Assembly (NCBI GenBank): GCA_973895155.1
Contig: OZ316899.1
Location: 186,001-250,000 of the forward strand
Direction of reading: 5' to 3'
Source of the DNA: Marsupella aquatica
Taxonomy: Eukaryota > Plantae > Marchantiophyta
Length of the DNA: 64,000 bases
The notes below the pieces were generated by a model that was given only the letters and a program-made list of their open reading frames with translations, was not told the origin of the DNA and did not search any database. A program made the translations under genes and the position numbers. Each line of letters begins with the position of its first letter. The first letter of the stretch is position 1. Of the stretch, positions 3,001 through 36,489 are shown piece after piece.

Positions 3001-3644
3001 CGGAGAGAGCAAATGGTATCATTGGGAAGATCCTCAACAAAACTGTAGCTGCGCACAAAACGGATTGGGATGATAAGTTGTACGCAGCGGTGTACTCGTA
3101 TAATCTAGCTTACAAAACTACTACGAGTCACAGCCCGTACTTTCTGGTGTTCGGCCAACATTCGTTGGTGCCCGTCGAATTTGAAGTGCACACTCCACGG
3201 GTCAGCATTCGGGATCGCTTACCTGAATCTGAAAGTCTGTCAGACCGAGCTTATCAGATTGAAGCCTTGGAAGAAGCACGGCTACTGGCAGCTCGACACA
3301 CCGTGAAGAAACAGGCAACTTCGAAGAAGCAGCACGACAAAGGACTACGGAGGGTCGACGTCGTGGCAGGCGATCTAGTCCTTCTGTACGATAGTAGGTA
3401 CATGCAGTTTCCAGGGAAGCTGCATACCCGGTGGTTGGGGCCCTTCCTTGTCAATCAGATCTACCGAAACGGATCTTTGGAGCTTGCGACGTATGCCGGC
3501 GATTTACTCCCCATGCGAATCAGCTACGATCGTGTAAAAAAGTACCACCATCAAGATGACGACGCCGATAGCGATGTTCGCGAGGACGCTTCACAATTAA
3601 GCAGGGAGCTATGTGACGCCGCCGGTACGGCGGTTAATGAGTGA
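2..3644 (+). pseudogene. pol: gypsy pol (protease C-terminal half, RT, RNase H, integrase with HHCC, DDE and GPY/F module), disrupted
   Basis: Motifs: IRLANG...LLGRPWL (PR); WVSPIVIVPKK, ICQDYRKLN, MPFGLCNAP, FIDDF (RT); DVSGFCIG, EALGII, TDH (RNase H); H..GGH..CDLC, WGIDYIG, SDRGTHF, NGMAERAN (IN); WLGPF. There is one frameshift near 1237 (tac-a-ttt-ctt-gac-ggg restores FLDGYSGYNQI) and two in-frame TGA stops (2628-2630 and ~2751). Confidence 0.95.
3594..3611 (+). other. candidate polypurine tract
   Basis: Purine-rich aagcagggag lies immediately 5' of the LTR start. It is short and imperfect. Confidence 0.45.
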
Positions 3645-3969
3645 TTCAGTCTAACTGTGCTCGGCACGCGCGTTAGGTGGGTCTTAGGCCGCTATTATTA
3701 GCATAACGACAGTATTTAGATAATCATTAGGGGTAGGACATCATTAGGCAATAAGGGGGACTTCAGGTTCGGGCTGGCGGCGGGTCGCTATTCGCACACC
3801 CGGGTTACGAGCGTGGAAGGGCCCCTCCCTCGGGTCCGTATAACGAACTTAAGGAAGCGGCCACTGACGCACGCTAACTCAGACCGGCGGAGTGGCCGGT
3901 ACACCACAAGCGTGAGCGGTTCAGCCTATGGGCGTCGAGGAGACGTCGGGGATCGACAAGCCCTCAAAG

Positions 3970-3977
3970 TATAAAAG
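3970..3977 (+). promoter_or_regulatory. TATA box of LTR-A
   Basis: TATAAAAG about 100 bp upstream of the LTR-internal ATG (4078), conserved in the second copy (36482-36489). Confidence 0.6.
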
Positions 3978-4077
3978 GGGAGCCAACCCTTTGTAGTGCA
4001 CCAGTCCATCAGTCCGCGCGCCAGCTTCGACCCCAGCTCTCTCGTTCTCTCTAGGTCGCCACTACTATCTCCTCTGA

Positions 4078-6720
4078 ATGTCGCACACGATCCTCTCCAG
4101 CTCGGCCATTCGATTCTGGACGCAGTTCCTATCTACCGGAAGGCACTTGGCCGATTCATTGAAACACGCCAACCCGCGCCGATACGAAATCGAACGCGAA
4201 TACGAGAGAGCCATCCGCCTAGCAGGACGACACCACTACGTCCTTAACTTTGACTACCCGTCTCAGAGCGAGCTTTACCGACCAGCAGAGGTATCTGGGT
4301 ACTTCTTCAACGAAGACAAATATATCGGGTTCTGGGAAGCATTGCTTCGGCTTCCGGACGAGGTCTTCAATATCCCGGGTACAATCGACCTGCAGCGACA
4401 TCACTTCGACCACATCCCTGCCCGGGTTCGGGCTGTCATTAACGGCGAGTCCAATACCAACCGTTCGACAAGAGCGTCCGCACTCGCTTCGGAGAACTTC
4501 TACCAGCACCTGCAGAGCTTCATGGGAACTCGGCCATCAACCAACATGACCAACTCAGCCGGGCCCGTACCCGTACCCGTGCCCATGCAACCTCAGGCTC
4601 AGCTTCAGCTTCAGCCTCAGCCGCAGCCTAGCCAAACCCCACCACCTATCACCCAGCCAGCACAGGTACGCTCCGTCATCAACGCTGTGGATCTTAGCGA
4701 TGACGACGAGGCTACCCCACCCTTGACCAGGCGGCCCAGAGGAACAAGCGCTCGGGGGGCCGACACTATATCGTCCCCACCCCCTTCTCTGACCCCAGGA
4801 GCGGCCCCAGTAGACAACATGGTGACCGTGGCCGCCCCGGGCCCGTTACCAACCGCAGTGGCACTCCCCAGGCCCGATCGGGAGGATGGGGAAGTATCAC
4901 CTTCCCCGAGTCAGTCACCGGGAAAGAAGAGGAAGGAATCCGCCACTACATCCGGGTTACCGTTGGCCACGGTAGCCGTAGCCAAGGTGACGATGCACCG
5001 CATGGGGGAAAACGTTCACAGCAACATCCTCCATCCCAAGCATGCGGTGTACCTGAAGACTCAGGGATTTGAGCACCTCACCTCTCTCCCCTGGAACACT
5101 TGCAGGTACTACGGGGAGGACATGACAGAATTCGTCAAGAATTATGACGACGTACGTCAATAGACTCGGCTGCGGGGAAGGAATATGTCCCTCACAGAAG
5201 AACGGCTCAAGATGATCTTTGGGTTACCCGAAGGTGACCATCGAGTCGAATCACGGGCTCCCGGGGGCAAGGGGACCAAGTACCAATCTTCAAGTTTTCC
5301 CTCAGAGGGAGTAGTAGACAACGGGTTCGTGATGAGGACCTGCCTCATGCCCGAGATAGCTGAGCGGCTGGAGTTCCAAAGGTACGCTCTCCACATGATG
5401 GAACCCCGAGGGGAGATCTCCGCCACCCAGGTTATCCAGGTCGAGAACTATCGACCTAGGAAATGGGCGTCGTACTTCGCTAAGAAATTCCATGAAGAGA
5501 TGGAGCGGCGAAGGAAGACGTTGTACATTGGCGGGAAGGCGTATTTCGCTAGCCACATCGAAATCATTCTTGAGTGGTACGCTCGGTTTGATCGACGAAC
5601 CCTTCCCCGCATCAACGTTACAAAGCTGGTTCCAGCTAGGTGGGTTTTTCCGGCATTGGAGAGACGGCCCCAACCTGAGGCCCGAAGTCCAGTGGACACG
5701 CCAGCTTCACCCACCCCACCTCCACAAATAGCTGTAACCGTAACCGAGGAGGCGCCGGAGGGGTCGGTCGTTGCAACCGTTGATGCGACCCAACTAGCCG
5801 GGCTAAGTACAGAAGTTGGTATGGCAGAGGTCTTACCCGAACCCGGGTCTCCCAAGGACCCGCCGGTGGCAATTCTGGAGAACCGGACATCGCTGCAGGA
5901 GGACACTCCAGCCCCTTCCAACGTTATGTCCCCAGGGCTAGACGTCACTGCCCCGGCCCCTGCGCGTGTTGACGTCTGCCCGTGCCCAAATCCGGACAGG
6001 CACAACTTGGACCACCCGGAACTCTTCGTACAGGGTACGTTCCTGAACGGGCTTCTGGGAGATTTCTCTCATCAAATTGCCCGGGATACCGGGGAGTTCA
6101 TGGCCCGGAAGGTAGCCTGTTTCTTCAATCAGGAGTTGGTTGCCGCCGTAAAGGCAGGTCGGGCCGAGTCGGAGGCCCTTCAGAGGATAGAGCGGTACCG
6201 GGTGGAGTCCGTGTACCTAAAGAACAAAGTGGCGGCTCAAGAGGCTGAGCTTCTGGCACTACGACCCAAGGTTGCAGCCGCCGATGAGTTGTTAGCAAAG
6301 GCGTACGCTCTTACCGCCCTAGCCGAACAGGCCAAAGCTGGGAACGAGGCCAAGATTACACGACTCCGGAACCAGATTGACAGTTTGAAGAAACAAGCTG
6401 TCACCTGGCAGAAAGACCTGGAGGAGGTCGAGGAACGAGCCCAGCGGGACACGGCGGAGATAGCCACGCTGCAGGCCGAGATGGCGCGGCTCCAAACCGA
6501 GGCCGAGAAGCAGGACCAGCTGGCGGGTAAACTGACGAGCGACGCCCAGCAGCTGGAGGAGGCATGTCAGGAGGCAGTAGAGGAGACGGACGTGGCGAGG
6601 CGAGAGAACGAATCTCTGCTGGACCAGGTCCAGCTCCTCAAAGCGGACAATGACAGGCTTCGAAGGCAGCGGGATGGCCGTTCCCATTCGAGCGGCTCTG
6701 GCAAGCGTGCCAGGCATTAG
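4078..6720 (+). pseudogene. LTR-internal ORF (~880 aa): N-terminal domain, P/Q-rich linker, plant retroelement accessory domain (Transposase_32/PMD-like), C-terminal coiled coil; one premature stop
   Basis: ORFs 4078-5163 and 5185-6720 are in the same frame, separated only by TAG at 5161-5163, which reads CAT in the other copy. Core motif YLKTQGFEHLTSLPW...EFVKNYD...LRG..MSLTEERL..IFGLPEG...LEFQRYALH; the C-terminus is heptad-rich. Confidence 0.85.
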
Positions 6721-8055
6721 CGGCGGAGTAGGAATAGATTAGGATTAGGATTGGCTTAGTCAGGCTCTTGGGACAGGCACCTGCCTTAGGTACAACAGCG
6801 CTGCCCTGCTGTCCAGCCTGCGTAGATTAGGATCTTCTAATAAGACACAGCCGTTTTCCGGCCTGACTGTCAGCTTAGTTAGGACCTTAGTCAGCGAATC
6901 TTCGGCGAGAGGACACCCCGTCCCTCGGCTCTTAGTATTTAGTGTACCCCTCGGTAGAGGCAGGGGGGTTTTTAGTTTCAGAGTCGGACATCCGCGGGAT
7001 ATGCGGGGAGTCCCGACCTCTGGGAATGACAGAGTACCAAGGGGAGGGGGTAGGACTAAGCTCGTCGGGCGAGTGCGGAGCCGGGCTCCGTTGTAGTGTG
7101 CACCCTCGGCCTTGAACCTGTTCATTCCAGGGCTGTCGGGTCAACTAAGTGTACGCATATGTTCCCTTTGTAGTAAAATCCTTTCCCATCATTTTCCTTC
7201 GTGTAAATCGAGATTGTATGCATGTGTGCGCATATGTGTGTGGGTTTCTCATATATGGGTGGCAGCGCCAGGCCGAACGCACTACCCGAGACGTGCACAG
7301 GGTGCAGCCTGCGGGTAAGTGGTTGCGAGCACGGGTTGAGGACCGGTATCATCGAATCCGGATCGAAGGCGGACAGCACGAAGGCTTAGAAGCCCTTAAG
7401 CCGGGGTCGATCCTGCTATCGACTAAGGTACGTTCCGGCGGCGGAACACAAACCATACCTAGGAGGTGTCCGTATTTAGCAGTATGCGCACTTAGCGCTA
7501 GTTTACGAGAATAAGGTGCATTACGTGCTTCCCTTCCTGCCCGAACCCTCAGGTTTACGAGGGATGTGCCCGTCTAAGCTGAAGTCTGAGTTAAGGCCAA
7601 AGCCTACGATGTGACACTGTGGCTTTGTTACTTTTTGTGTTCCGACACTTTGCATCCTTTTTTAGTAAAGTAGTTGATTTTTGTCAAATTTTGAAGAGAG
7701 AGTGGGTGAGAGAGACAGAAACAGACGTGGGATTGCATTGCGACACTGGGCAGGCAGATAGGCCAAAGGAATTGACAATAATCTGACAACCCTGCATCAC
7801 CGATGCCTTGGAACTAGCACAGAATGAGGCGTTGGCAACTACCTCTACGTAGCCCACCCATGCTCCAAGAAATCTCAGTTGCCCTTTCCCTCATAGGATG
7901 AGCTGGATGTCACGACTCCAAGGTTCCACTACATCTAACAGAGCATCTTTAGTGTCATTACCACTACATCTGTGTTCCTTGGGGTGATCAGATCTAGTGT
8001 CTTGAGTCAAGCATTTTCCGCCTGTTGTTGATAGTGGGACTCAACAGAGCTCAAT

Positions 8056-11600: not shown

Positions 11601-12861
11601 GGCGCTGCTCTCCTTTGTATTGCGCGTGGGAAGACCGAAATCTAGCGACATTTTCAAACCATGTATTGTGCAGCCGTTATTAGCAACTCGCATCCTTTGC
11701 TCACAAATTAACTGTCTTTCTCTATCACGCCCACGGTATTGCTGCTGAACTTTGCAATTTCAAACACTTCAATGTAGGCCTCTTTAACTTTCTCTGGGCG
11801 CTTCAAGGAGATGGATTCCAAACAGCCCTCCACCGGGATCTAATCACTGAGACTACACTTCAATGCCTACAACGTCACTACGCGCGCCACGAAGCGAAGG
11901 AAAGGAATGACGGAAAAAATGTGGCAGAGGCTTGCCTCAATTCAGCTCGGAAGCTCTTCACCAACAGCTCAGTCGCACCAACAAATCAAGTTGGCCTACA
12001 CTGTAGTACCTAGGACTTCTGATTGCTGGTCTCATAGCTCGCAAGGTGCACTGTCAAATTCCCATAACGCCACGTTCGACTGGCTCAGCTCCGCTATCAA
12101 GAAGGATGGGCTTAGCCTTCTTGAGGTCGATCCACTTACGGTGACAATTCTCCGAGGAGAGCTCCTGGTCAAACTCTCGAGTGTCGTCCACCTTGAAGGA
12201 ACCGGAGCTAACTCCTTTCCAGCTTCCTTTCTGCAACTGCGCATGGCCAGCCTGCTCTACTTTCAGCTTTCCAGATGCTACTGCGCGTCAGGGAGAGCAC
12301 TCTGGGTTGTGGGTTGGGCAAAGCCTTCCCTCAAATCCACAATAGTTTTGAATCCCTTTCCACCAGCCGGCTTAGCCCTGCCTCACTGATGTCCCCACCT
12401 CGCCAGAAAGCCACATTTTCATCCTTGTAAAGGGATCGTGCACTTTTGGAAGACCGAAGCCTGATGGGTGCAAGATTGGGGATATCAGCGGAACTAGGGA
12501 TTCCCTGGAAAACCAGCATCCAGGCAAGGCAAGGCATTCTTCAGTTTCAGCATCCTTTCCTGAGCTTCCAAGCCTTGCTGAGAATCAAAGGGCAAGAGGG
12601 ATTCCAGAGCCCCCTCTGTTTGATGCTATGGAATGACATCTGATTTTAGGGTCCCTAAACCCTAGTGACATCTATTTGTAGGAAAGAAGTCTTCATTGTT
12701 TACAAACTTGATTCATGCTTGTTTCATAGCAGTCCTTGCATTAATTAAAACATCAATGTGCACTTAGTTAAGAGAACTACTATTGGGGAATAAATGACCT
12801 TGCCATAAGGGTACTCTATTTGGATGGCAGTTTTTACTGCAAAAGTGAGGAGGTCTGGCTG

Positions 12862-13190
12862 GGATGGGACACCTTTTAATGTTCATTGGGTTTGCGCATT
12901 CTTAAGCCATGAATTGCTGACTAGTTTGTTCAAGATGACTCCAAAATTCAATGAATCCAGTATATACTAGATGGACTAGGTCTATGCAACTAGGATGGGA
13001 CACCTTTTAATATTCATTGGGTTTGCGCATTCTTAAGCCATGAATTGCTGACTAGTTTGTTCAAGATGACTCCAAAATTCAATGAATCCAATATATACTA
13101 GATGGACTAGGTCTATGCAACTAGGATGGGACACCTTTTAATATTCATTGGGTTTGCGCTTTCTTAAGCCATGAATTGCTAACTAGTTTG
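12862..13190. repeat. 131-bp tandem repeat, about 2.5 copies
   Basis: ggatgggacaccttttaat... recurs at 12862, 12993 and 13124 with near identity. Confidence 0.92.
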
Positions 13191-13686
13191 TCTTCTGACC
13201 ATGTTGTCATTATTATAACAAAAATTAAAGATCTTTATTTAGTCCAATTTCAACTCACAAATTTCCAACCATACTTTGATAACCTACAAGCAATTTTTAT
13301 AGATAATTTTTGGTTACATGCATGAATGATCTTAGTGTACACATATATGACATTGAAATCTACAATTTATTATGTAACCCTGAGGATTATCATTACAATG
13401 ACAATAATTCTTTTGAATCCCATGGGGAAACCTTTGTATTTTATCTCATTCATATCCTTGAAATGGTGTTGCAGAGTTCTTTGGCTCTTCATGTGAACAC
13501 AAAATCAAGGTGTAGGGTGAGCAAATTTTGTAGTAGTGGGTCAGATCTCTGCGTGGGCTCACCAAACTGAAGGTAGGGCTGGTGTCCATCCTATACACAG
13601 TGACACTTCCAATTCATTCCGATTACAGCAAATGTCTTTCCAACATGCCAACTAAACTGCGATGTCGATCTTATTGATTTGTAGGC

Positions 13687-14367
13687 ATGGCACGTAACAA
13701 GCAGAAGGCCAAGAAGCCTAAGACGGAGGTGAGCAACACACAGGTGTCTTGCACAGATTGTGAGAAGTTCTCCAAGAGTCAGGTGTACCAGAAGGCAGCT
13801 CATTGTTGTGCCATTTGTGATGATGGTGGGGGCTTGGTTATTTGTGATGGCCCATGCATGAGACATTTCCACGTGAACCCTGAGTCTAACCTTGCCGTAG
13901 AGAACAACTGTCCAGGGGTGGGCCTCCCCTCTGCACACGAGGGAGCCTGGATGTGCACTGATTGTGTAGAGAAGCAAGCTAAGTGTGCACAGTGTGGGAA
14001 GTTGGGGTCTTATGAGACCTTTGCTGATGCCGGGCTAGTTGTTCAGAAATGCCCTGACAGATTTTGCATAAGATTTTATTGTTTGTCATGTTTGCCTACT
14101 CATGCCACAGTTTGCCCACTTCATACATGCAAGGCATGTGGTGAGCATAATGATGAGTATTGGACAGACATAGTCCATTGTGTTAGATGTCCCACAATGT
14201 GGCATTTTCATTGCTTGAAGGACCTTCAAGCAGAAGGCTATGCTTGTGACAGAGAAATCTATGATCACTCTGCACATGGCGTTGATCGATGGATCTTTTA
14301 TTGTCATCGCCATCCGATTGATCCTACTTTGCGCATTCCTGTCAGAGATCACATATCTTGGCTTTGA
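13687..14367 (+). CDS. stand-alone EDM2-like PHD zinc-finger cluster protein (226 aa)
   Basis: CAICDDGGGLVICDGPCMRHFH; CTDC..KQAKCAQCGKLGS; CP..FC.RFYC..C; CPLHTCKAC; CVRCPTMWHFHCL; WIFYCHRHPIDPTLRIPVRDH. This matches the PHD array and IYC..H.ID..L.TP.RDH tail of plant EDM2. A tttgtag acceptor lies 2 nt before the ATG. Confidence 0.85.
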   Translation: MARNKQKAKKPKTEVSNTQVSCTDCEKFSKSQVYQKAAHCCAICDDGGGLVICDGPCMRHFHVNPESNLAVENNCPGVGLPSAHEGAWMCTDCVEKQAKCAQCGKLGSYETFADAGLVVQKCPDRFCIRFYCLSCLPTHATVCPLHTCKACGEHNDEYWTDIVHCVRCPTMWHFHCLKDLQAEGYACDREIYDHSAHGVDRWIFYCHRHPIDPTLRIPVRDHISWL

Positions 14368-14749
14368 AGCTAAACGAAGTGGGTTGGCAGAGTGCCCCTA
14401 ATGTGGATGTATTGTTTGGAGATTGCAGAAAGTTCATTTTTTATGAGAAGGACCATTGAGATATTAGGCAGCAGTTATCTTGTGCTTACATGTGGCTAGG
14501 TACATGCCACTAAAAACTTACCTTAAGCCTTCTAGGATCTCTTCAGACTGAGCAATCATTTTGAAAATTATAAACTTATTATTATGTGCCTATGAAGTAT
14601 AAGGTTTTTTTAATGGATAACAAATTCTTAATTTGTATAAGTTCTTGATTCTGATTCAATGGGTACTAGTTCTTTATTTATAACATATTTTATATGTGGC
14701 ATCACAAAATAATACTCAAGACACTATCTTCTTTTTGTATTCTATGCAG

Positions 14750-14838
14750 TATCATTCATGGCAATATTTGAACAATATTGAAGCCAGACCCAAGAAAAGA
14801 AGTGACGACTACTTTGGACAAATCAGTACTTTGGAAAG
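14750..14838 (+). other. candidate internal exon (YHSWQYLNNIEARPKKRSDDYFGQISTLE)
   Basis: Pyrimidine-rich acceptor ttctttttgtattctatgcag and donor aag/gtgagc. In the paralogous copy at ~30297 the EARP codons differ only at synonymous positions (gaa/gag, gcc/gcg, ccc/cca) and the donor is kept. Confidence 0.5.
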
Positions 14839-15015
14839 GTGAGCACCTAAACATCAAATTTATCCCTTTTTGTACTCCTAAATCTTGAATGATTCATAAA
14901 TTTAATGATAAAAGTTACAACTTACGGCATTTCGGTACTCAGATCTTAAATGGTTCGTGTATATTTGACCGGAATTGTAATTTTTACTAAATAAATTATT
15001 GTTCTTACATGGCAG

Positions 15016-16380
15016 ATGGGAAAAAGAAAGCGTAATACTTTAAGAAAAAAAGAATTGGGGGAAGATTTTTCTGTGGATGTATTTGTTACAGTGTGGGAAG
15101 ACCTCAAAAAATTAGATACCATAAAATTGAAGTTTGCACTTCATTGGATTCTATGCCATGACAACATCCTTGAACTTTTTGTTAAAAAAGTTCTTAAACT
15201 AGAGTCTTCAAGATTTTCAAGAACACTATTCTTGAATGGGTATCAAAATTGTAGAAGCCATATCATTCAGATCTTTCCTCCTGAGGTGTTCATTGAAATT
15301 GATGACGTCTTTCTTCATCACAGTTTCAGACTAAAATTACCTCAACCTTTGAAAAAATCAATTACCATGTTTTCTAATCTTGACATTAGAAAGCTTAAAC
15401 TTTTTCAAAAAGAAAGAGATAATATTTATAGAAGTGGAGGAACTTATGCCAAAGTTGAAGTAGACGTTCAACGTATTTCCTCTTCAAAACTAAAAACACT
15501 TACGGGTGTAATTTTAGGCGATTGGGATCAAACTACAACAACATTTACCTCTGATCCAAACTTTATTTTCTCAAAATTTCCATCAGACCTCATTATCATA
15601 GAAGAAAAAAAAGGATTTACCTATCTTTTTGATAGGTCTGGAATCAACCCATATTTGATAGCAATGATATTCCATCAAGATATCCTATCACCTGATTCAA
15701 TGATCTTCATTCGAAGATTATTAGAACAATTATATGCTGCCCATCATGTTATCCAAAGAGGGAAAGGAAAAAGATCATGGGAAAGTAAGATGACAGGGTT
15801 TGGTCCTTTTCATAATCCTTACAAAAAAGATCAAAGTTGTGTATCTTTTTATACTCATGAACAAAAGATAAAGACATTCTTCAATCAAGATTGTCCTGAT
15901 GCAGCCAATTTTGAAGACATGGTAGATAAATATTTTCATCGAGAGTTAATCGATATTATACTTGGACTCTACATGTGGTTATGTCCACAAATGTTAGACA
16001 GTTTTTTAGATTATTCTCATCCTTACTTACGTTCAAATGATTATGAGATGAACATATTTGATAAAGCACTAAAATGTAAAGGTCCTAGTGCTTATCAATT
16101 ATATATTAGTAAAGATTATTGTGTAGAAACTCACGCTGATCATGATACAGCAGAATTTACTTTATGTTATGTTAGTCATCCTGATGCCAAAATTTCTCCT
16201 GGAAACTTTATTATTCCAGAGTATGGAATATTATTACCTATTAGAGATGGTAATTTATTTTCATTTCGTAGTGACATTGTCCATGGCACAGGATATAGAA
16301 TTCCAACATCAAATCCTATATACGTAGGAGCTGTTACCATAAACAAAAAATTAGATAGACTTTTACAAAGAAAACATTAA
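15016..16380 (+). CDS. 2OG-Fe(II) dioxygenase, TET/JBP-like (454 aa)
   Basis: C-terminal DSBH signature: KMTGFG; YQLYISKDYCVET-H373-A-D375-HD; GNFIIPEYGILLPIRDGNLFSF; IV-H423-GT. Intronless and visibly AT-rich relative to the flanks. The N-terminus carries a basic NLS-like stretch (KRKR...RKK). Confidence 0.75.
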   Translation: MGKRKRNTLRKKELGEDFSVDVFVTVWEDLKKLDTIKLKFALHWILCHDNILELFVKKVLKLESSRFSRTLFLNGYQNCRSHIIQIFPPEVFIEIDDVFLHHSFRLKLPQPLKKSITMFSNLDIRKLKLFQKERDNIYRSGGTYAKVEVDVQRISSSKLKTLTGVILGDWDQTTTTFTSDPNFIFSKFPSDLIIIEEKKGFTYLFDRSGINPYLIAMIFHQDILSPDSMIFIRRLLEQLYAAHHVIQRGKGKRSWESKMTGFGPFHNPYKKDQSCVSFYTHEQKIKTFFNQDCPDAANFEDMVDKYFHRELIDIILGLYMWLCPQMLDSFLDYSHPYLRSNDYEMNIFDKALKCKGPSAYQLYISKDYCVETHADHDTAEFTLCYVSHPDAKISPGNFIIPEYGILLPIRDGNLFSFRSDIVHGTGYRIPTSNPIYVGAVTINKKLDRLLQRKH

Positions 16381-16852
16381 TAAAAAAGCAAATATATTAT
16401 TTACATTTATAATTATTTTTTATTACTCTAGACAGGTTAAAGTCTGGGTTCTTTAATTTGAGGAATATAGGATCATAGGAAAATGTGTAAGAGTAGGAAT
16501 CATGGCATCTTATGCTAGGAGTGGGAAAACCAGGAGGGTTAAGAGGAGATGATGGTCCAACTTAAGAGGAGGTGAAAAGGACCTAGTAGTGAAAGTAGGA
16601 ATCTCAATGTCAAGTGGATAGTTTTCCTCAAACATGTCATATATCTCCCTTAAGTTCTTACAGATCCTTGAAAGGCCTATAAATACATCATCCATTTTGA
16701 CACTCTCATCCACTACTAGGTAATTTATCTTGGAGAATAGAATGGGAGTGGTATTCTTGACCAAGTATTCATCATGTTGGACCCTAGATATATCATTTAT
16801 TTCATGAAAAGGAGCTTTAGAACCAATTTTCTGGAGGCAACTCCAAGGCTAG

Positions 16853-16873
16853 TTAGGGATTTAGGGTTTAGGG
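16853..16873 (+). repeat. interstitial telomeric motif (TTTAGGG, about 3 units)
   Basis: ttagggatttagggtttaggg followed directly by T8. Confidence 0.8.
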
Positions 16874-17720
16874 TTTTTTTTCCTTCAAAAAAACCATAGA
16901 AACCCACGGGAAGGGGGGCCCAACAGGGCAACAAAAACCGAGGCAGCAAAATGCAAACCTGGTGAGACCAAGGGGTCCAAAGGTGCAAGGGCTCAAAAGG
17001 AGTGAACAAGGTAGGGAAAAGCACTAATCAAAGGAAAATCCTGTTAGCTATGACTGTTTCAACTAGAAAGCCATGCATGATCCGAACGAGTAATCCACCT
17101 AAGACGTTCCTTACTCACCAACTCTTTGACTCTCAATAATCTAGTATGTTTTCTACTGGGACCAGAGGCCTCACAGAGGCCATGCAAGGAATCCAACATT
17201 TCTGAAAGGAGGAGATTCAAGTTGAACCTTCTACTATTAGCACGATTAAAGCGCTGCTCGTTCCATGCTAGCCAAAGAGTCCAAAGCACATGGTAAACCA
17301 CAAAAACACGAATGGTGCCCTCGATTGGAGTGCAGCCAGTGACCTCCACGACAGAAAAAATGTTCAAGTACCGCCAAGAAATAACTCCAAGAAAAGTCCA
17401 CCAAGCTAGCTGCCAACACCTCTTAGCAAAGGGACAAGTGAAGAAAAGATGAGGAGAAAAACACCTCTAAAATATGGGCGCAAAGTAGACAGCTTCCATC
17501 TCCTTAATTTACCAATTCTGCTAGCTTGAACCCCAGTGAATAACCCTTGAGCTGCTATCCTCCAGAGAAAAATGGGGACTTTCAACGGTAAATCAGAAGA
17601 CCAGAGAGCATTCCAGAGTTTGTTCCACTCAAGGTCTAATAAAGAAATGCTCCAAATCCTATTAAGTCTTAGAGAATCAGAGCCTTTCGGTTGAATCACA
17701 GCCTTTCGGTCAAATCAAAG
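16874..17720 (-). mobile_element. 5'-truncated L1-clade LINE (zf-RVT C-terminus, 3' UTR, poly(A))
   Basis: Minus-strand WNKLWNALWSSDLPLKVPIFLWR (zf-RVT) and VLWTLWLAWNEQRFN, frameshifted between 17406-17699 and 17059-17367. A8 tail at 16874-16881. Confidence 0.8.
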
Positions 17721-18317: not shown

Positions 18318-19823
18318 CTAAGTGTAATTGTAATCTGTAAACATATCAAAGTGAATTCGCTCCATGGTCGTGTTGTCCCTTTGATCAAGTGCAGCATATC
18401 GAGCTTCCCGGTCTTCATCTACTTGCTCTTGTCTTGCATGACACTGAGCCCATCTTCTCCTACTCATGTCATTCCTAAATGTCATTTGTCTCTCCTCTCT
18501 CTGTCCGGGGGTTTCCTCAACCATACCTTCCTCATTGTACAGTTTATACACACCGGGTCCTCGCTTGTCTGAAAGTTGTAGTTCATCATCAATGTCCTCT
18601 TCTTCCAGGGATTCAGTAATGAGGTAGGACTTACTGACACCTGTAGCACTTCCCCATCTTAGCATAGGTAGCTCACCTTTCAGAAACCCAGCTGCCACCA
18701 TCAAATTGTACATCCTAGCAGCTGAAGGCCCTGCTCGACTAAATAATTTCCACAAATCTAGACCACCATCCTCCATCTCTCCAGTAACTGAGATGCGTAC
18801 ATCTGCTTTCTTGCCTGACCTTCCCACAACTTCGTATAATGTTCTTGTGAAGCAATACCATTTAAAATACCGGGGATCCTTGAGCATGTTGTTGTATGTT
18901 TCAATGTGATGGACACTCCACAACCATTTCTCGATCTGCTCCAAAAAACTTATCTGCTGATTTGTCTTGTAACTAGGTGTCATTAGTATCCGGATACTTG
19001 GATGGTGCTGCCAGATAGAAAAGTAAGTGGGGGTCGCTTCATACATAACAGCTATTCCATCCTGTCCTTCTATGTGATCTCCCTCTCGCACTTGGTAATC
19101 CTGTGGTGGATCATGATATCCCCAAAGCAAAGCGGGACCAAAGTACTTCCCAATATTATAATTATACACACCTAGCTCTAACCATGTAATAACTACTTCT
19201 GTGGGAGTCACTGCTTCCCAATAACTACTTTTCTCCAAGTGAACCAAAGATACATCTTCTGGGTTAAAGGGGTATACATCATTTCTAAAGTAACCCCCTT
19301 GACGAGCCACCACCGCTGGGTCACGCCTCAATTCATAAAAGAACCTCATTGCCAAGTGACTAAGCTCAGGTGCAATTGGTAGATTAAAACTCATCCAATC
19401 ATCAGATACTACTATGTCAGAGGTGAAAAATGGGTTGAATGCTACAGTAACCCCGTCCCTCTCCATCTTCTTCCACTGGGCAGCCTGCAAAAATGTGATG
19501 AGTCGGGGAAGTGTATACTTCCCACAATTGATCCGTACTTCCCGAGCAGCCCACGTTTTCAATATCAAGGGCAACAACTCATATAACTTACTATAAACAT
19601 CTAGACAACATTTTCTCTGGTTATCCCTCTGTGCTAATCCCTCATGAACCATATTAGCCATTGCTTTAAGTGCAATAAAAGTTTCATTTTGAGGATGCTC
19701 CCTTTCTAATTCCGACAACATGAATTGAGCTATTCGACTGTTAGCCCGGCCTCCTAATCTATAAGACAAATCCTCAGGTAATTGTACATTAATATGTCCA
19801 GACCACTCAAAAAAAGGCAGCAT
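18318..19823 (-). CDS. hypothetical protein (501 aa), unrecognised; acidic/charged C-terminus
   Basis: Uninterrupted 1.5-kb ORF with globular-looking composition, starting 68 bp downstream of the 716-aa ORF on the same strand. Confidence 0.6.
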   Translation of the reverse strand: MLPFFEWSGHINVQLPEDLSYRLGGRANSRIAQFMLSELEREHPQNETFIALKAMANMVHEGLAQRDNQRKCCLDVYSKLYELLPLILKTWAAREVRINCGKYTLPRLITFLQAAQWKKMERDGVTVAFNPFFTSDIVVSDDWMSFNLPIAPELSHLAMRFFYELRRDPAVVARQGGYFRNDVYPFNPEDVSLVHLEKSSYWEAVTPTEVVITWLELGVYNYNIGKYFGPALLWGYHDPPQDYQVREGDHIEGQDGIAVMYEATPTYFSIWQHHPSIRILMTPSYKTNQQISFLEQIEKWLWSVHHIETYNNMLKDPRYFKWYCFTRTLYEVVGRSGKKADVRISVTGEMEDGGLDLWKLFSRAGPSAARMYNLMVAAGFLKGELPMLRWGSATGVSKSYLITESLEEEDIDDELQLSDKRGPGVYKLYNEEGMVEETPGQREERQMTFRNDMSRRRWAQCHARQEQVDEDREARYAALDQRDNTTMERIHFDMFTDYNYT

Positions 19824-19891: not shown

Positions 19892-22042
19892 TTACCTCTG
19901 CATTGGCCGAAGGGTTTCCAGTTCGAGGGCTTCATCAACCTCAATCGGATCCCAACGATCACTCTGCTCTCCAGACATTGTGGTCCAGTGGTTGATGCTG
20001 ATCTTTTTCAGGATCTCAACTCGTTGTTTGTTTATTGGGTCTTTCAAAGCCCCATCCAATAACTTGGTGGCTTTCTTTGCTTCATCTCTCAACTCTTGCA
20101 CTCGAAGTTCCCAAGCATCATAAGCATGTCGTGGTATCCGAACATCCTTAGAATTACATTGCACCAACTCTCGCTGGGCTATTTCACCCAACCACTTCTT
20201 TCTCTCCTTCTCTCTCTGCTTGGCACTTAATTCCAATGTTCGGATATACTCCACCCTCTCGAGGTTTTGCTGCTCCAACTTTTGTAATGCTTCAAAAGTC
20301 AGTGTGAGCTGCTGGGTAGTTTCTTTAAGCGACTTCTCTATCACTGTTATCATCTGAGAGGTATGACCTGCACATTGAGAGTGAGTATGGCATACTTTAG
20401 CAAATTCATCTTCTAATTGCAGCCGCTTCTCCTTTTCTTCTTCATATTGGCCTGAAGCCTCCTTGCTCGCTTTTTGGGCCTCCTTCAATTGTGCATTCAA
20501 CTCTCTGCCCTCTTCTTCAAAGGCAGCTACATACCGACTCAATTCTTCTGCCTTTGTGGTATTCTGAGTGTGTTGCTTCTCTGCTTCCTTCCGGACAGTT
20601 GTCACTTCCTCTATCAGCAAAGTAATCCTTGCCTCTTTTTCTTGGGACTTCATCTCCTGCTCATGCAACATTTGTTCTCGTATCTCCACCTTCTCATTGA
20701 GGAGTCTCACCATCTCCTTGTTTTCCTTCAGCAAACTCTCCAACTTCTCAATCCTCCCTTGGAGCTTAAGGTTGGTGTTGGCGCTTCTGAACATATCTTC
20801 TTCCTGCTGCTTTGCCTTTTCTCTCTCTCTTACCCCAGTTTCTACTTCGAGTGCACAAATGTGGGCCAACCCGTGCACTTCCTTGGCTTGTTGTAACCAC
20901 AAACGTTTGTCAGTTCCTACAGGGAAGGGTCGATTAATAAACTTCATCCTCTGCTCAAAGGAGGTGAGCTCAGACAAGACAACATTTGATAGCAACTCTG
21001 TCAACATTGGTTGATGGTATACATAATCAGATTGGGCAGTCGATGTCATAGCTTCTTCTTCCTCTTTGACCGGGATTATCACTCTCCTTTTCTTTCTTTT
21101 CAAGGACTTAACACATGCATTCCCCTTTATCCTCAATGTGCGTAATCCTTGTGCGCCTTCTTCATCAGAATTGTCCACTTCATCTTCACTGCTTGAGACC
21201 AGGCCCGAGACCAGGGATCCCTTTGGGGCATAGAGTCTCGGATTCTCTTCTTCCCCATCCTCGCTCTCCGACTCCTCCTTTTCTTCTTCCTCCTGATTTG
21301 CCTCCTCTCGCTCCTCTGAATCGCTGTCCTGCAAGGAGATTATTGTTACCCCGGTTGTGACCCTGTCGGCAGTGAGGGCGTGGTCCATCACTACGCTTAA
21401 TACATATGCACAAACTGACGGAAACAATGGTAGCCCCTTCCTGGTTATAACACTTGCAAGGTTGCGCTTCCATATCAACAATGGGTGAAGAGTTCCATCT
21501 AATACTCTCTTGGCAACTGATAGTTGCTCTGGCGTTACATAATGGTACCCACTCTTGAGGATTACCCACTTAGTAAAGAACTCCACATACTTGCGGACCT
21601 CTTGGTTTGTCATAACGCCATATTGGACCTTCTTCTCATGCTGGAGCTCTCCTCCTTGTTTTAGGAAGGCACTCATCTCTCTTCCCGTAAGTGCCTCAAT
21701 TGGATAGTCAGCTGGTAGGCTATCTGGGGCGGAAATCCCAAACAAAGTCGCTAATTCCTTGTTGGGGATGCGGTAGGCTTGTGCTCTGTATGTGATAAAC
21801 ACTCCAGTATCTGCAAAATTGACATCCACAATATCTTTGTAAAGCTGACAAGCACGATCAATTGATACAAACCTATCAATTCGGACAAGCCCATAGCATC
21901 GAGCCCTTTCAAATATCTCTCTGTATTCTTCAATGAAAGCCACCTCAGAGATTGAGTTCCTCAATCTTTCTTCTGGAGTTGATCGAGGTTGTTTATTTTT
22001 GGCTGGAGGGACCTCTACTCGGGTTTGATTTGGAGATGTCAT
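19892..22042 (-). CDS. retroelement accessory-type protein (Transposase_32/PMD-like domain + acidic linker + long coiled coil, 716 aa)
   Basis: N-terminal FIEEYREIFERARCYGL...ITYRAQAYRIPNKELATLFGI...YVEFFTKWV; E/S-rich linker; about 250 aa of heptads. A homologous fragment lies at 49217-49531. Confidence 0.7.
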   Translation of the reverse strand: MTSPNQTRVEVPPAKNKQPRSTPEERLRNSISEVAFIEEYREIFERARCYGLVRIDRFVSIDRACQLYKDIVDVNFADTGVFITYRAQAYRIPNKELATLFGISAPDSLPADYPIEALTGREMSAFLKQGGELQHEKKVQYGVMTNQEVRKYVEFFTKWVILKSGYHYVTPEQLSVAKRVLDGTLHPLLIWKRNLASVITRKGLPLFPSVCAYVLSVVMDHALTADRVTTGVTIISLQDSDSEEREEANQEEEEKEESESEDGEEENPRLYAPKGSLVSGLVSSSEDEVDNSDEEGAQGLRTLRIKGNACVKSLKRKKRRVIIPVKEEEEAMTSTAQSDYVYHQPMLTELLSNVVLSELTSFEQRMKFINRPFPVGTDKRLWLQQAKEVHGLAHICALEVETGVREREKAKQQEEDMFRSANTNLKLQGRIEKLESLLKENKEMVRLLNEKVEIREQMLHEQEMKSQEKEARITLLIEEVTTVRKEAEKQHTQNTTKAEELSRYVAAFEEEGRELNAQLKEAQKASKEASGQYEEEKEKRLQLEDEFAKVCHTHSQCAGHTSQMITVIEKSLKETTQQLTLTFEALQKLEQQNLERVEYIRTLELSAKQREKERKKWLGEIAQRELVQCNSKDVRIPRHAYDAWELRVQELRDEAKKATKLLDGALKDPINKQRVEILKKISINHWTTMSGEQSDRWDPIEVDEALELETLRPMQR

Positions 22043-25295: not shown

Positions 25296-28200
25296 TTAAT
25301 CCTTTAAATTTTTTGTTTGAAGGTTTCGCCACTTGTCTTTCAGATCAATCTGTGTCAAAGTCAATAAAACATGATAGATGAGCATGCAATTTGTCTTGTG
25401 TGCAAGGGTAAATACAGTAATACAAAAAGTAGGATATAACCATAGAAGACTTACTTCAGACCGGTCAATGAAGTGTGCACCCTCGGAAGCAAGAATTCGA
25501 CTCCACTTGCCTGGTCCAAACCTGAAATTAACCTTGGCTTAGAAAACCTCTTGTTCTTAGAGAAAAACACCAATTAATACCAGCTAGGTAAGATATTACG
25601 TCAATGCATTTTGATTGATAAGTCATAGGTTCTCTACTTGCCTGCGGACTGCCTGTTTGAGACAATTTGTTTCCTCTTTAGACCACCTTTTAGTTGCCCT
25701 ACGAACACGTATTAGACCATTGGGGCCTTCTTTCATGACTGCCCGGGTGATCAATTTGGAATTTTGTAATCCAATACAATCTTGATGCAGCCTCAACCTC
25801 TTAGATGACGGGCTGGACGTATCCTCCTTCCCTGTGCCCTGCAAAGACATCCAATTTGTAATACTCCAGCAAGGATTGCAAACATTACAAAATACAGTAC
25901 ATCTTCCATACTGTACAAGATAGATGTTGTTGTCACCAATGATTGAAAACAATGAAGTTTCCTGCAGACCACCTCACCTTGGCACTCGAAGTTGCTAGAT
26001 TGCCCTCCTCTGCTTTGTCTTTGGATTGGAACGGGGTGATTAGGGACCGAGAAGGAGGATTTAGCAAATCTATAATTCGTTTTCTCCCTAAGTTCTTCCC
26101 CATATCACAAATGCCTTTGTAATTCTCACTCTGTGGGGCTGGAAGCTCAACTAATCTCTGTTCTTCCGGATGAATTAGGTGTTGGACTTCATTTGACGAT
26201 TGTTGCATTTTGCTAGTAGTAATTCCTCTGTTGAGCATATTAACCTCTGTGCTCACTTCTATCACAAAAAAAACACCACATTGGAGACTTCAATTCTCCA
26301 TCAACAGCACATACAAAGACCTAGGAGTCTGAAACTACTCTATACACTATCAATCTGAACTAATCAATGCTAGTTCTAGTGCAATTTTGGTCAAACTGTA
26401 AGACTACATATGAGTTGAACTATGACATTGGTGGGCACTACATACCATACACTGGTTGGAAGGATGCCTGCTTTGGCAACAATACAGGCGCCATGATCTG
26501 CTGGTTGGCCACCTCCAAAGGAGCTCCTTCATTCTCATCTATCAAATTCTCTTTACCTGTTCCAATCTCCACCCGCCTTGTTCTATAGTGATCCAATTTA
26601 GACTGCAAATACAACCATCCAATTAACGGAAATGATATTTCTCCACCACAATATGTATATTCACAATGACTTGCAGCAAACAACAAATCAGTCCCACCTT
26701 TTACCAAATCTGATAGCTAGTGAGAGAAGACAAGGCCCAAACATTGTTAAAACAATGCATCTGTCTCCTAGCCTGTGAGTGCGGGACAAAACCAATGGAA
26801 AAATCCCAAACTTTTTTTGCACCACTCCATCGAGCGGTGCAAATTAAACCAACTATTTAATAAGACATTTAAGGAAACAATCCTTTGGAGGAGGAGGGGA
26901 AGGGAGAGAATCATGAGCTAAGTTACCCAAGGTTGATCCAAATCAATACCTGAAGCTCAACTCGGACTTCCTCGGCAACACTTTCATACTTGTCTTTCAA
27001 AGTATCCACATCCCTACGAACTGCGGCCAAGGTGGTCACCATCATTTCATTCCTCTGTAGGAGTAGCTCCAACTTGACACCTATTGTGTTGTTTGCCTCT
27101 ACTTGCATCCTCAAGTTGGTCAGTATTGTTTCGTTCCTCTCTGTCTGTAACTCCAAGGTGGTTGTCATCTTCTCATTCCAGTCTTTCTGGCGCTCTTTCT
27201 CTATTTTCAACTCACCTACAACCTCCATCAAGCACAGGCATGATGTACAACAAGATCTGACTGTTTTTGAAGCTTCTGAAATGCTCAAGGGGAATACATT
27301 CTTTAGTGTGAATATGTCGGAGTGCTCCGGCAACTCCGTACCATTTGTTGTCAACTCGATACCAAATTTTGTCTTCAATTTTTCCTGTTCTCTATCCTCT
27401 GTTCCAGGCGTTGCTTCCGCTTCGCCCAATGTCTTCCTTGACATTTCATGTTCTTTACCCCCCGACAGAGGTTCTGTCTCTTGAAGACTCAATGTCTTCA
27501 TGGACATTGCATGATCTTCATGGATTATCCCAACCTTTGTCACCATCTCATTTTCACAAGCTCGATTGAACAAAGAACCATCTTGGTGTTCGTTCACAAA
27601 AGAACCATCTTGCTGACCTTGCGGCTTTGCTCCACTGGTTGAGAATAGCCCGAGAAGTCCTCCACTACTACATGGATCACCCTCATGCACACTAGAAACA
27701 ACAGTTCCTTTGGCATGTCCTGACATTGCATCATCGTCGTTCACAATTTGCAGATGCATTGTGAGATGTTTTTGTTCTGTGCAGTTCTCCTCCATCTCGT
27801 GGTTTTCCACTCCATGATGCTCCACACCCACTTGAGTAGATGTTTTCCAATGGAATACTTGTGGTCTTGGCAAAGACACAATTGAAGGGGACTTCTCACT
27901 CAACAGAATTTGCAGATGGGATCCAAAATTGTAAGTGCAAGTCATGTTACCTTCGGAGATTTGTTTCCGGGCTCTGCAAAGGAGGTCGATCAGTCTCCCG
28001 CCAAGATATTCTCCCCAATTCTTCCTACTACTTGTTTCTTCAACTTGCTTTATCTGGCACAAAGACACATCGGCCCTGCTCCCCTTAAAGTGAAGAGCCC
28101 CCAATTGAAACTCTAGCCTCTCTCTGATTAGGGAATCTTTGCAATATTGCAATGAGTAAGAACCATTGCTGTTCCTTTTAATCCCTGCAAATGACCTTGG

Positions 28201-28512
28201 ATTATATCGAACTGCTTTTTGCTCAAATGGCTCCCCTGACCCTTGCAACTTGAATGTCTTCTTGATAGAATCCAAACTCAAGTCTATTCTTCCCCCACAA
28301 ACCCATGTTTCAGATTGTTCACTGTCAAAGTTCCGGATGAAATCTATCATGTCAGACTTAGAATGACTCTTAGTGTCCCAACGAACTCCCAAAACACAGT
28401 CTGCAAGCCCATTGTGCTGAAGATATTCTGAATGTCGCGCTTGACACAATGTTGTCACCACAAGTGGTGGGATAAAATAGAATGTTGGCATCGCCATAGG
28501 CTTGGAAGACAT
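25296..28512 (-). CDS. spliced fusion gene: retroelement accessory domain + coiled coil + C-terminal TRF-like (telobox) Myb domain, ~772 aa; exons complement(26950-28512, 26446-26602, 25978-26258, 25642-25838, 25455-25521, 25296-25349)
   Basis: All five introns have consensus ends (gtattg, gtatgt, gtgagg, gcaagt [GC donor], gtaagt; AG acceptors) and the phases (0,1,0,2,0) join without stops. The last three exons give KRWSKEETNCLKQAVRRFGPGKWSRILASEGAHFIDRSEIDLKDKWRNL. Exon 1 has YLQHNGL...W...DFIRNFD...GGRIDLSLDSIKKTF...ERLEFQLGALH...FGSHLQILL, homologous to the LTR ORFs. The 5' start is uncertain. Confidence 0.85.
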
Positions 28513-30294: not shown

Positions 30295-30728
30295 AAATAT
30301 TGAGGCGAGACCAAGGAAAGAACTATACACTCCTTGGGACAAATCAATAGTAGATTTATGAAGGTGAGTACCTTAACATCAAAATTCCCCCTTTCTTCCC
30401 ACCTAGTACATGTTGAAATATTCATAAATCTAATGATAAAAATTACAACTTACGGCATTTCGGTACTCAGATCTGAAATGGTTCGTGTACTATTTGACCG
30501 GAATTGTAATTTTTACTGAATTGGAATTAAAATCTTGAAAAAAATTCTGTGGATTTGTTTGCTACAGTGTGGGAAGATCTAAAAAAATTGACACCATAAA
30601 ATTGAAGTTTACACTTTATTGGATTCTTTATTATGAAATATTCTTGAACTTTTTGTTAGAAAAGTTCTTAAACTAAAGTCCTCAAGGTTTTGAAGGACAC
30701 TATTTTTGAATGGCTATCAAAGATGTCA
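30295..30728 (+). pseudogene. degenerate partial duplicate of the 5' part of the TET/JBP-like locus (small exon, intron, N-terminal coding region)
   Basis: Colinear with ~14775-15250 (e.g. ttacaacttacggcatttcggtactcagatct; cagtgtgggaaga; accataaaattgaagttt). It has indels and stops and lacks the catalytic domain. Confidence 0.88.
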
Positions 30729-30780
30729 CCTTTTGGACGTGGTTACAATTATCCCTATTTTCATTGCTCCCTGTGTGAAT

Positions 30781-31185
30781 GAGGGTACTCTTATCTCCTG
30801 AGGGTACCCTTGTGCTTGAGGGTACTCTTATCAGTGAGGGTACTCTTATCAGCGAGGGTACTCTTATGGATGGGAACGCTTATCAATAACGGTACTTTGA
30901 TCAATAAGGGTACCCTTATCAATGAGGATACTCTTATCTCCTGAGGGTACTCTTGCGTATGAGGGTACTCTTATCAATGAGGATACTCTTATATCAGAAA
31001 GAGTACTCTTATCAATGAGGATATTCTTATATCAGCAAGAGTACTCTTATCAATGGGTACGCTTATCAACAATGGTACTTTGATAATGAGGGTACCTTTA
31101 TCAGTGAGGGTACTCTTATCTCCTAAGGGTACCCTTGTGTTGGGCCTTGTGCATGAGGGTACTCTTATTAATGAGGGTACTTTTA
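30781..31185. repeat. minisatellite with core gagggtactcttatc and variable linkers
   Basis: Roughly 20 degenerate copies, with embedded palindromes agggtaccct and aagagtactctt. Confidence 0.9.
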
Positions 31186-35900: not shown

Positions 35901-36481
35901 CACCATTCTGGAAGTCGCACTAGAGCTTCATTTATCGACAAGAACTTCTCGGACTTGTCGAAGAAGAGTTTGCTCACCACCCCTTCGCCTACTACTTGTG
36001 GATCCACCTGCAAGGGTTGATTGATACAACAGTGGCCGCTAATCTCAGATAGTAGTTCTACCCCTAACCTCTTTTCATACTCATACTTCTTTGGTTGTAG
36101 CTTTTTGAGTGAGTCTGCTAACTGTGACGCCGCCGGTATGGCGGTTAATGAGTGATTCGGTCTAACTGCACTCGGCACGCGCGTTAGGAGTGTCTTAGAC
36201 TGCTATTATTAGCATAACAACAGTATTTAGGTAATCATTATGGGTAGGATATCATTAGGCAATAAGGGGGAATTCAGGTTCGGACTGGCGGCTGGTCGCT
36301 ATTCGCACACCCGGGTTACGAGCGTGGAGGGGCCCCTCCCTCGGGTCCGTATAACAAACTTAAGGAAGCGGCCACTGACACGCGCTGACTCAGACCGGCG
36401 GAGTGGCCGGCACACCACAAGCATGAACGGTTCAGCCTATGGGCGTCGAGGAGACGTCGGGGGATCGACAAGCGCTCAAGG

Positions 36482-36489
36482 TATAAAAG
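36482..36489 (+). promoter_or_regulatory. TATA box of the solo LTR-A
   Basis: TATAAAAG about 100 bp upstream of the ATG at 36590. Confidence 0.6.

Follow-up and report, generated by a model that had tools for sequence, protein, structure and literature searches.

Do liverworts possess a TET/JBP-type dioxygenase? Active DNA demethylation of land plants is ascribed to ROS1/DME-type glycosylases, and TET/JBP oxygenases have been described from animals, fungi, protists, green algae, and phages. The question is raised by a gene in a 64,000-nucleotide stretch of Marsupella aquatica DNA (contig OZ316899.1, positions 186,001 to 250,000), referred to here as the window. An open reading frame (ORF) in this window had been read, from its letters alone, as coding, in a plant genome, for a TET/JBP-like dioxygenase (the original prediction; coordinates of all features are in Table 1). 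We consider it probable, with moderate confidence, that the ORF is an intact nuclear liverwort gene for a very divergent Fe(II)-dependent dioxygenase of the TET/JBP clade, acting by the mechanism proposed below. The evidence supports this interpretation as regards fold, clade, and host. What appears new is a TET/JBP-type enzyme in an unexpected lineage; the literature searched gave no description of a TET/JBP homologue of bryophytes, ferns, or land plants, a result that does not fully exclude an earlier mention.

The ORF begins with ATG and continues for 454 codons with zero internal stops, and its product has a predicted mass of 53 kDa and a predicted isoelectric point (pI) of 8.8. Given the base composition of the ORF (A 0.36, T 0.33), a codon has a 0.079 probability of being a stop, or about one stop every 13 codons, and the probability of 454 codons without a stop is ~7e-17. 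When the low-GC island around the gene (~14400-16500) was shuffled 500 times, the longest open frame was at most 171 codons, versus 461 observed. An ORF of this length lies far beyond chance, which can be excluded as its origin. The coding sequence is also uninterrupted; full-length relatives align with it end to end, for example, residues 3-445 of relative P0001 with residues 22-454 of the dioxygenase. The ORF is intact, intronless, and AT rich (31.5% GC), as originally described. GC content at third codon positions (GC3) is 21%, compared to 40-65% in neighboring long ORFs, and the observed/expected CpG ratio is 0.38. The original prediction took this composition as a hint of foreign or mobile origin; low GC3 and CpG depletion would be equally consistent with a long stay in methylated DNA during which selection acted on the protein.

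We predicted the structure of the protein with AlphaFold, using as input a family alignment (A1) of the relatives found in the exhaustive HMMER scan described below. The model has a mean predicted local distance difference test score (pLDDT) of 86.8 and a predicted template modeling (TM) score of 0.90. It consists of seven helices at residues 10-140 followed by an alpha/beta domain, whose last eight strands form a double-stranded beta-helix. In a Foldseek search of the PDB, ranks 1 to 22 were occupied exclusively by TET/JBP enzymes (CcTet, CMD1, and TET2), with E values of 1.2e-8 for CcTet, 3.6e-8 for CMD1, and 1.7e-7 for TET2, and target-normalized TM scores of 0.42-0.47 for CcTet and TET2. 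The next structural classes below these were FTO (2.4e-6; TM 0.27-0.30) and anthocyanidin synthase (4.8e-6; TM 0.22-0.28), and NgTet1 also came after the first 22 places, at 3.8e-5. The predicted viral structures of BFVD gave best E values of 1.4e-12 to 2e-8, with target-normalized TM scores of 0.58-0.66 for the top four. The named proteins among the top BFVD matches (1e-9 to 2e-8) are "2OGFeDO JBP1/TET oxygenase domain" proteins of phages and Sylvanvirus, and generic 2-oxoglutarate (2OG) oxygenases and AlkB start below them, at ~3e-5. Alignments to the 261-287-residue phage TET/JBP proteins extend over 320-330 columns and take in the whole catalytic domain. A structural comparison of TET/JBP with AlkB and other 2OG families, which the original prediction proposed as a check, thus placed TET/JBP first in both databases.

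Sequence profiles lean to the same clade. A catalytic-core profile built from 17 family members (A6) found CMD1 as its best match among PDB sequences (E 0.0052, 19.9 bits), in an alignment reaching from the HxD motif as far as the distal His with its "VHGT". When 50 family members were scanned singly against Pfam, only two families recurred: PF20515 (Tet-like) was matched by 6 members, with a best E of 8.9e-4, and PF12851 (Tet_JBP) by 2, with a best E of 2.9e-4. These matches, in 8 of the 50 relatives, all fall short of the curated thresholds of 34.9 and 27 bits, the best scoring 20.6 bits, and they cover the profile regions that hold the HxD motif and the distal His. Neither the protein nor the 50 relatives matched an AlkB-type Pfam family, JmjC, or the families of plant 2OG-dependent dioxygenases (2-ODD; 2OG-FeII_Oxy and DIOX_N). 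We accept the TET/JBP-like identity at the level of fold and clade because the two fold searches, the match of the core profile to CMD1, and the recurring Pfam leanings to both TET families agree, and because AlkB, JmjC, and 2-ODD matches are absent. Fold-level searches can thus recover enzyme families overlooked by both domain libraries and genome annotation.

Two other memberships were considered and rejected. AlkB/FTO membership was set aside since there is no AlkB-family Pfam match and FTO ranks below every TET/JBP structure. The plant small-molecule 2-ODDs (DOXC class) were set aside for want of a 2OG-FeII_Oxy or DIOX_N match, anthocyanidin synthase being weak in fold.

The active site was examined by family conservation. 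H373, D375, and H423, which the original prediction had named as the iron triad, and the strand GNFIIPEYG (from residue 396) are all found where it had placed them. H373 and D375 are each conserved in 33 of 35 family members and H423 in 27 of 27. An additional Asp, D377, is kept in 32 of 34. Among the 22 members aligned at the position of the upstream R248, ~91% keep this Arg; R428, after the distal His, is present in 16 of 24 and invariant in the closer subfamily. Further conserved positions are G263 (25/26), Y368 (29/33), and N443 (21/25). In the A6 alignment, the HxD segment pairs with the H345/D347 region of CMD1, and the "VHGT" of the dioxygenase with the "VHGT" of CMD1. The spacing from HxD to His is 50 residues in the dioxygenase and 52 in CMD1 (H345 to H397; PMC7854593). 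Judged from these residues, the metal site is clearly kept, and the candidate co-substrate and base-reading residues match loosely.

The exhaustive HMMER scan covered 1.84 billion protein cluster representatives and returned 46 relatives, mostly fragments. Several are full length and uninterrupted (405-459 residues, 22-38% identity). The closest, L002, comes from a public sequencing run and shares ~79% DNA identity and 75% protein identity over the first 213 codons. The ratio of nonsynonymous to synonymous substitution rates (dN/dS) between the two over these codons is 0.195; therefore, the gene has evolved under purifying selection. A word-indexed protein search found a single relative when queried with the dioxygenase sequence and five when queried with a profile, with no bridge to annotated TET proteins. 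Pattern scans of IMG/VR and of JGI metagenomes with the dioxygenase protein gave no relative, and an exact look-up in public assemblies had neither the dioxygenase protein nor a helicase protein of the window on record.

The window itself holds a second, degenerate copy, in which the upstream noncoding region and about the first 86 codons survive at ~75% identity. Its reading frame is lost, and it ends at a tandem-repeat array. This array, of short GAGGGTACTCTTATC-like units, directly follows the truncated gene fragment. The dioxygenase family is small and appears to be fast turning over, duplicating and decaying.

The host was identified from a Ty3/gypsy element at the left end of the window, ~11 kb from the dioxygenase gene. 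The best matches of its reverse transcriptase (RT)/RNase H/integrase ORF are in two liverworts, Calypogeia fissa (67-69% identity) and Riccia sorocarpa (52-55%); seed plants and ferns reach 41-44%. Because of these identities, we place the window in a land plant, most likely a liverwort other than Calypogeia. The plant genome of the original prediction is therefore borne out, and it is that of a bryophyte and not of a flowering plant. The gag-pol region of the element is split over three ORFs, with RT/RNase H/integrase zinc finger followed by the integrase core.

Several findings weigh against a TET/JBP-clade liverwort gene, and we collect them here. At the sequence level, the protein had no Pfam match even at E <= 1, plain phmmer found no match among PDB sequences, and the full-length family profile A1 retrieved no TET chain from the PDB. 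The protein falls below the curated cut-offs of both PF12851 and PF20515, and with this formal Pfam result it is best called a new, very divergent TET/JBP subfamily. In the fold searches, query-normalized TM scores were just 0.35-0.41, in part because of the extra N-terminal domain. In the pocket, known enzymes hold the C1 and C5 carboxylates of 2OG with two Arg residues (R1261/R1896 in TET2, R224/R289 in NgTET1), the second lying 10-15 residues past the distal His in TET2, NgTET1, and CMD1 (PMC7854593). The sole Arg after the distal His of the dioxygenase is R428, at +5 instead of +10 to +15, and it is absent in a third of the family. Similarly, the N4 of 5-methylcytosine (5mC) is read by an Asp or Asn three residues past the HxD Asp (CMD1 D350, TET2 N1387, NgTET1 D234; PMC7854593), and the dioxygenase has its Asp at +2 (D377); the HMMER alignment pairs D377 with CMD1 D349, one residue before D350. 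As for the family, several relatives are broken: L002 is frameshifted beyond the 213 codons compared, and L005 and L006 match the dioxygenase in two pieces. The sources checked for 30 family representatives were raw-read (Logan) or JGI/ENA metagenome assemblies in 30 of 30, with no annotated genome or proteome among them. Lastly, the liverwort context is derived from a single gypsy element, as further liverwort-like gypsy pol pieces are lacking in the window. A match of profile A1 to USP16 in the PDB, located in the helical linker, was rejected as spurious.

The original prediction had noted that the Arg usually seen after the distal His is not obvious. This stands in that no Arg occupies the usual +10 to +15 positions, but R428 exists at +5 and the well-conserved R248 lies upstream. 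The first co-substrate Arg could plausibly be R248, and the second would have to be R428. The accompanying caution that activity or substrate may differ was justified, given how loosely the co-substrate and base-reading residues fit.

Preceding the catalytic domain is a basic, all-helical N-terminal domain. Residues 1-145 have a pI of 9.75, and a KRKR sequence at residues 3-6, in a disordered tip, resembles a nuclear localization signal. The seven helices appear both in the full-length model and in a separate model of the domain (pLDDT 75.7), and the helical bundle is kept in full-length relatives. A search of the PDB with the domain model gave no significant structural match (best E 3). From charge and position alone, the domain may serve nuclear import and contact with DNA or chromatin. 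A ParB-like or helix-turn-helix nature of the domain was considered and is unsupported, with zero significant PDB fold matches.

Combining these parts, we propose the following mechanism. The KRKR tip would bring the protein to the nucleus, where the basic, family-specific helical domain would probably contact DNA or chromatin. H373, D375, and H423 would hold Fe(II) in the double-stranded beta-helix, and a co-substrate, 2OG or possibly ascorbate as in CMD1, would be bound with the help of conserved Arg residues, for which R248 and R428 are candidates. A flipped-out 5-methylpyrimidine in DNA, most likely 5mC, would be oxidized at its methyl group, with D377, just past HxD, as the candidate reader of the exocyclic amine of the base. 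The gene would do so from methylated-looking DNA rich in transposable elements (TEs), as a member of a family that holds several degenerate copies.

A wider reading, which we regard as possible but less than likely, is that liverworts would have a working TET-type pathway, of a kind not known from land plants. In it, a lineage-restricted family with its own, previously undescribed N-terminal DNA- or chromatin-targeting domain would oxidize 5mC or derivatize it in the ascorbate-dependent manner of CMD1, for epigenetic reprogramming by the host or for escape of mobile DNA from methylation-based silencing. If the protein is active, it offers a concrete gene with which to test the long-standing question of whether, in land plants of at least one lineage, the oxidized methylcytosines reported in plants have an enzymatic source. 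Plants would then also share the fungal and red-algal theme of DNA-modifying oxygenases that travel with or reside in repeats.

Among characterized enzymes, CMD1 of Chlamydomonas reinhardtii (PDB structures 7cy4-7cy8) is the top PDB profile match, is among the top fold matches, and belongs to the green lineage. It differs in having only 13-14% identity and another N-terminal region, and its base-reading residues D350, F416, and R418 have no clear positional counterpart in the dioxygenase. CMD1 uses vitamin C and not 2OG (PMC7854593). TET2 of animals and NgTet1 of Naegleria share with the dioxygenase the fold, the HxD...H triad, and an upstream conserved Arg. Unlike them, the dioxygenase lacks both a Cys-rich/CXXC domain and a low-complexity insert. 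In the TET pocket, the second Arg is followed by an aromatic residue and a His or Arg (PMC7854593); the Arg-x5-aromatic-x-His pattern past the distal His of TET2 and NgTet1 (PMC7854593) is not recognizable here. The best fold scores overall were those of phage and giant-virus TET/JBP proteins (BFVD A0A516LZ85 and A0A6J5MJF4; Sylvanvirus A0A3G5AIZ8), which are minimal enzymes of 261-287 residues without the N-terminal helical domain and are 8-14% identical to the dioxygenase.

The comparison with fungi leads to the first alternative, in which the same enzyme is accessory cargo of a transposon and oxidizes 5mC on its own element to evade silencing. CcTet of Coprinopsis cinerea (PDB structures 7vpn and 8jkk) is the top PDB fold match, and its Pfam family, PF20515, is the commonest among the sub-threshold matches. 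CcTet is reported to act on 5mC as well as 6mA (PMC11040006). Both the fungal Tet-like family and that of the dioxygenase appear to be multicopy, with decaying members in TE-rich DNA. In fungi, TET/JBP genes ride on KDZ/Plavaka, hAT, and IS3EU transposons (PMC12730594). The red-algal Plavaka elements carry an accessory gene, PAG3, with a ParB-like N terminus and a 2OG oxygenase (bioRxiv 10.1101/2025.02.11.637652), and Plavaka elements have been reported from Archaeplastida, a moss among them (PMC13519894). The fungal and red-algal cases serve as precedents for cargo. By its description, PAG3 resembles the dioxygenase in joining a presumed DNA-binding N-terminal module to a 2OG-type oxygenase in TE-rich algal or plant DNA. 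The copies within the family that are decaying (the fragment in the window, the frameshifted L002, and the two-piece L005 and L006), the position of the gene among TEs, and a GC3 sharply unlike that of its neighbors also speak for cargo.

The local sequence speaks against it. In contrast to many fungal Tet-like genes, the dioxygenase lies in a land plant and has no linked transposase: no transposase, integrase, or Rep domain adjoins it in the scanned ORFs, no scanned ORF of the window has a transposase domain, and terminal inverted repeats around the gene are absent, the only inverted pairs being short and at chance level. Unlike PAG3, it has no ParB fold match in the N-terminal domain and no Plavaka transposase in the window. 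The sequence common to the dioxygenase copies starts just 200-300 bp upstream of the ATG and excludes the neighboring ORFs. No conserved linkage of these neighbors (the PHD ORF described below, the 501-aa and 716-aa ORFs, and others) was found by tblastn of the relatives' contigs, which at 4 kb or less are too short to reveal linkage. The mobile DNA context of the original prediction thus holds for the TE-rich surroundings (gypsy pol, a coiled-coil ORF family, and a 4-kb repeat), and carriage by an element was not established. We regard cargo as a possible but doubtful explanation.

A second alternative accepts the TET fold and assigns the enzyme another substrate (RNA, a protein side chain, or a small molecule) or CMD1-like chemistry with another co-substrate. 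The Arg pattern past the distal His, unlike that of TET2 and NgTET1, would allow this, as would the 10-14% identity to any characterized enzyme and the rank of FTO, an RNA and DNA demethylase, as the next-best structural class. Against it, all of the top structural matches and the only sequence-level matches are DNA-base-modifying TET/JBP enzymes, no Pfam match to plant small-molecule 2-ODDs or AlkB was found, and the N-terminal domain is basic, with a tip resembling a nuclear localization signal. We consider this alternative improbable.

Less probable still is that the gene is a nonfunctional relic of a decaying family, a copy that died recently and is open only by chance. Many relatives are fragmentary or broken, the family is missing from every annotated proteome checked, and the gene sits in TE-rich, CpG-depleted DNA, all of which would be expected of a relic. 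Against this stand the vanishing probability of 454 open codons, the retention of all catalytic positions, the low dN/dS, and the several full-length intact relatives.

Contamination or an assembly chimera, with the island derived from a plant-dwelling fungus, alga, or virus, is very improbable: the anomalous composition of the island, the relatives in environmental metagenomes, and the weak Pfam leanings to a mostly fungal family would fit, but the island is internal to the 64-kb stretch and 11 kb from a liverwort-type gypsy element, another, diverged fragment of the gene is found 15 kb off in the window, the IMG/VR pattern scan gave no relative, and no viral or fungal genes were recognized near the dioxygenase. 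As to the viral or fungal source hinted at in the original prediction, a viral origin has no support from IMG/VR or from the neighboring genes, and the only sequence leanings, toward the Tet-like family of fungi and CMD1 of algae, are weak.

For the liverwort gene that we favor, the region before the ATG reads like a eukaryotic 5' untranslated region (UTR) with an intron. Under this gene model, the gene would be expressed as a spliced transcript with a putative noncoding first segment, which has stops in the frame of the dioxygenase ATG. Copy 2 and the related contig L002 keep the donor at 14838/14839. A pyrimidine tract and CAG stand directly before the ATG, and a relative that is 38% identical, in L001, has a similar tract and CAG 16 nt before its start codon. 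A scan for bacterial-type promoters and terminators was uninformative, as expected of a eukaryote.

Within the putative intron lies a block of ~78 nt whose identity across copy 1, copy 2 (~30434-30511), and L002 (~503-583) is ~92% or higher, exceeding that of the coding sequence. It can be folded into an imperfect hairpin with z-scores of -2.1 to -3.1 on the plus strand in all three copies and -0.4 on the minus strand, and L002 shows one double change from U-A to C-G. An Rfam search of the block had zero matches, and Rfam and tRNA scans of the whole window found nothing. The block could be a regulatory element or a small-RNA precursor.

Table 1. Features of the 64,000-nt window, with positions counted from its first letter
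Feature	Position	Strand	Basis
Dioxygenase coding sequence, single exon, intact	15016-16380	+	ORF list, chance test, AlphaFold model, fold matches
N-terminal all-helical basic domain, ~aa 10-140	15043-15435	+	Helices in both models, charge, conservation in full-length relatives
Catalytic domain, ~aa 146-454; beta-helix strands aa 361-441	15451-16377	+	Model, fold alignments, core profile
R248, candidate counterpart of first co-substrate Arg of TET enzymes	15757-15759	+	Conservation; role putative
H373-A-D375-H-D377, HxD metal ligand pair and additional conserved Asp	16132-16146	+	Residues, family conservation, CMD1 alignment
H423-G-T-G-Y-R428, distal metal-binding His with Arg at +5	16282-16299	+	Family conservation, CMD1 alignment
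Putative noncoding 5' exon, 89 nt	14750-14838	+	Acceptor-like ...TATGCAG before, AAG/GTGAG after; read from sequence
Putative 5'-UTR intron	14839-15015	+	Ends ...TTCTTACATGGCAG directly before ATG; read from sequence
Conserved block, imperfect hairpin, within putative intron	14909-14986	+	Cross-copy identity, folding z-scores
Possible polyadenylation signal AATAAA, overlapping stop codon	16379-16384	+	Read from sequence
Degenerate partial second copy (copy 2)	30296-30741	+	Self-BLAST, tblastn
Tandem array directly after copy 2	30778-31190		
PHD ORF, 226 aa, three NSD-type PHD zinc fingers, intact	13687-14367	+	Pfam PHD_NSD below cut-off; PDB NSD2 PHD region, E 7e-7
Ty3/gypsy gag-pol	71-3644	+	
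Gypsy RT/RNase H/integrase ORF	1311-2630		Identity to liverwort sequences
4-kb direct repeat, left and right copies	3612-7618; 36123-40115		93% identical
Shared-domain ORFs	33062-36178	-	Shared ~150-290-aa domain
	36854-39220	+	
	5185-6720	+	
	26923-28512	-	
	44880-45785	+	
RecQ-type helicase ORF, 879 aa, intronless	41045-43684	-	RecQ1 E 8e-26; Pfam DEAD and Helicase_C
501-aa ORF, intact	18318-19823	-	
716-aa ORF, intact	19892-22042	-	
Partial relative of 716-aa ORF	49220-49639		
Tandem array, 131-nt units x3	12859-13251		
Tandem array, 214-254-nt units	53207-54948		
Two adjacent TTTAGGG plant-type telomere motifs	16860-16880	+	

A neighbor of the dioxygenase gene is the PHD ORF, 650 bp upstream on the same strand, with a GC content of 47% versus 31.5%. 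Fusion of chromatin-reader domains to TET/JBP enzymes is a known theme (PMC4738411), and the adjacency of the two ORFs is suggestive. The PHD ORF is absent from the repeated unit of copy 2 and L002 and from the loci of the relatives. A spliced PHD-dioxygenase fusion was rejected from the sequence alone: beyond the stops of the 89-nt exon-like segment in the ATG frame, its one open frame enters the ORF out of frame.

On the other side of the gene, the consecutive 501-aa and 716-aa ORFs converge on the dioxygenase 3' end. Neither had a match in Pfam or among PDB sequences, and the 716-aa ORF has a partial relative elsewhere in the window.

The remainder of the window is rich in repeats. The two copies of the 4-kb direct repeat lie 32.5 kb apart and carry ORFs with a coiled-coil C terminus. 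The right copy has a single such ORF of 788 aa, and the left copy, which comes after the gypsy pol, has two, of 361 and 511 aa. Possibly, these repeats are the 3' portions of two copies from a single retroelement family. At least five ORFs share a domain of ~200 aa, are 23-46% identical in it, and have no Pfam match; they probably represent an uncharacterized repeat-encoded protein family of the plant. Also in repeat-rich surroundings is the ORF with a RecQ-type helicase core, which may be a host gene, a retrocopy, or TE cargo. Two further tandem arrays are listed in Table 1, and the telomere motifs lie ~480 bp downstream of the dioxygenase gene, with similar ones in the repeats near 53.2-53.8 kb.

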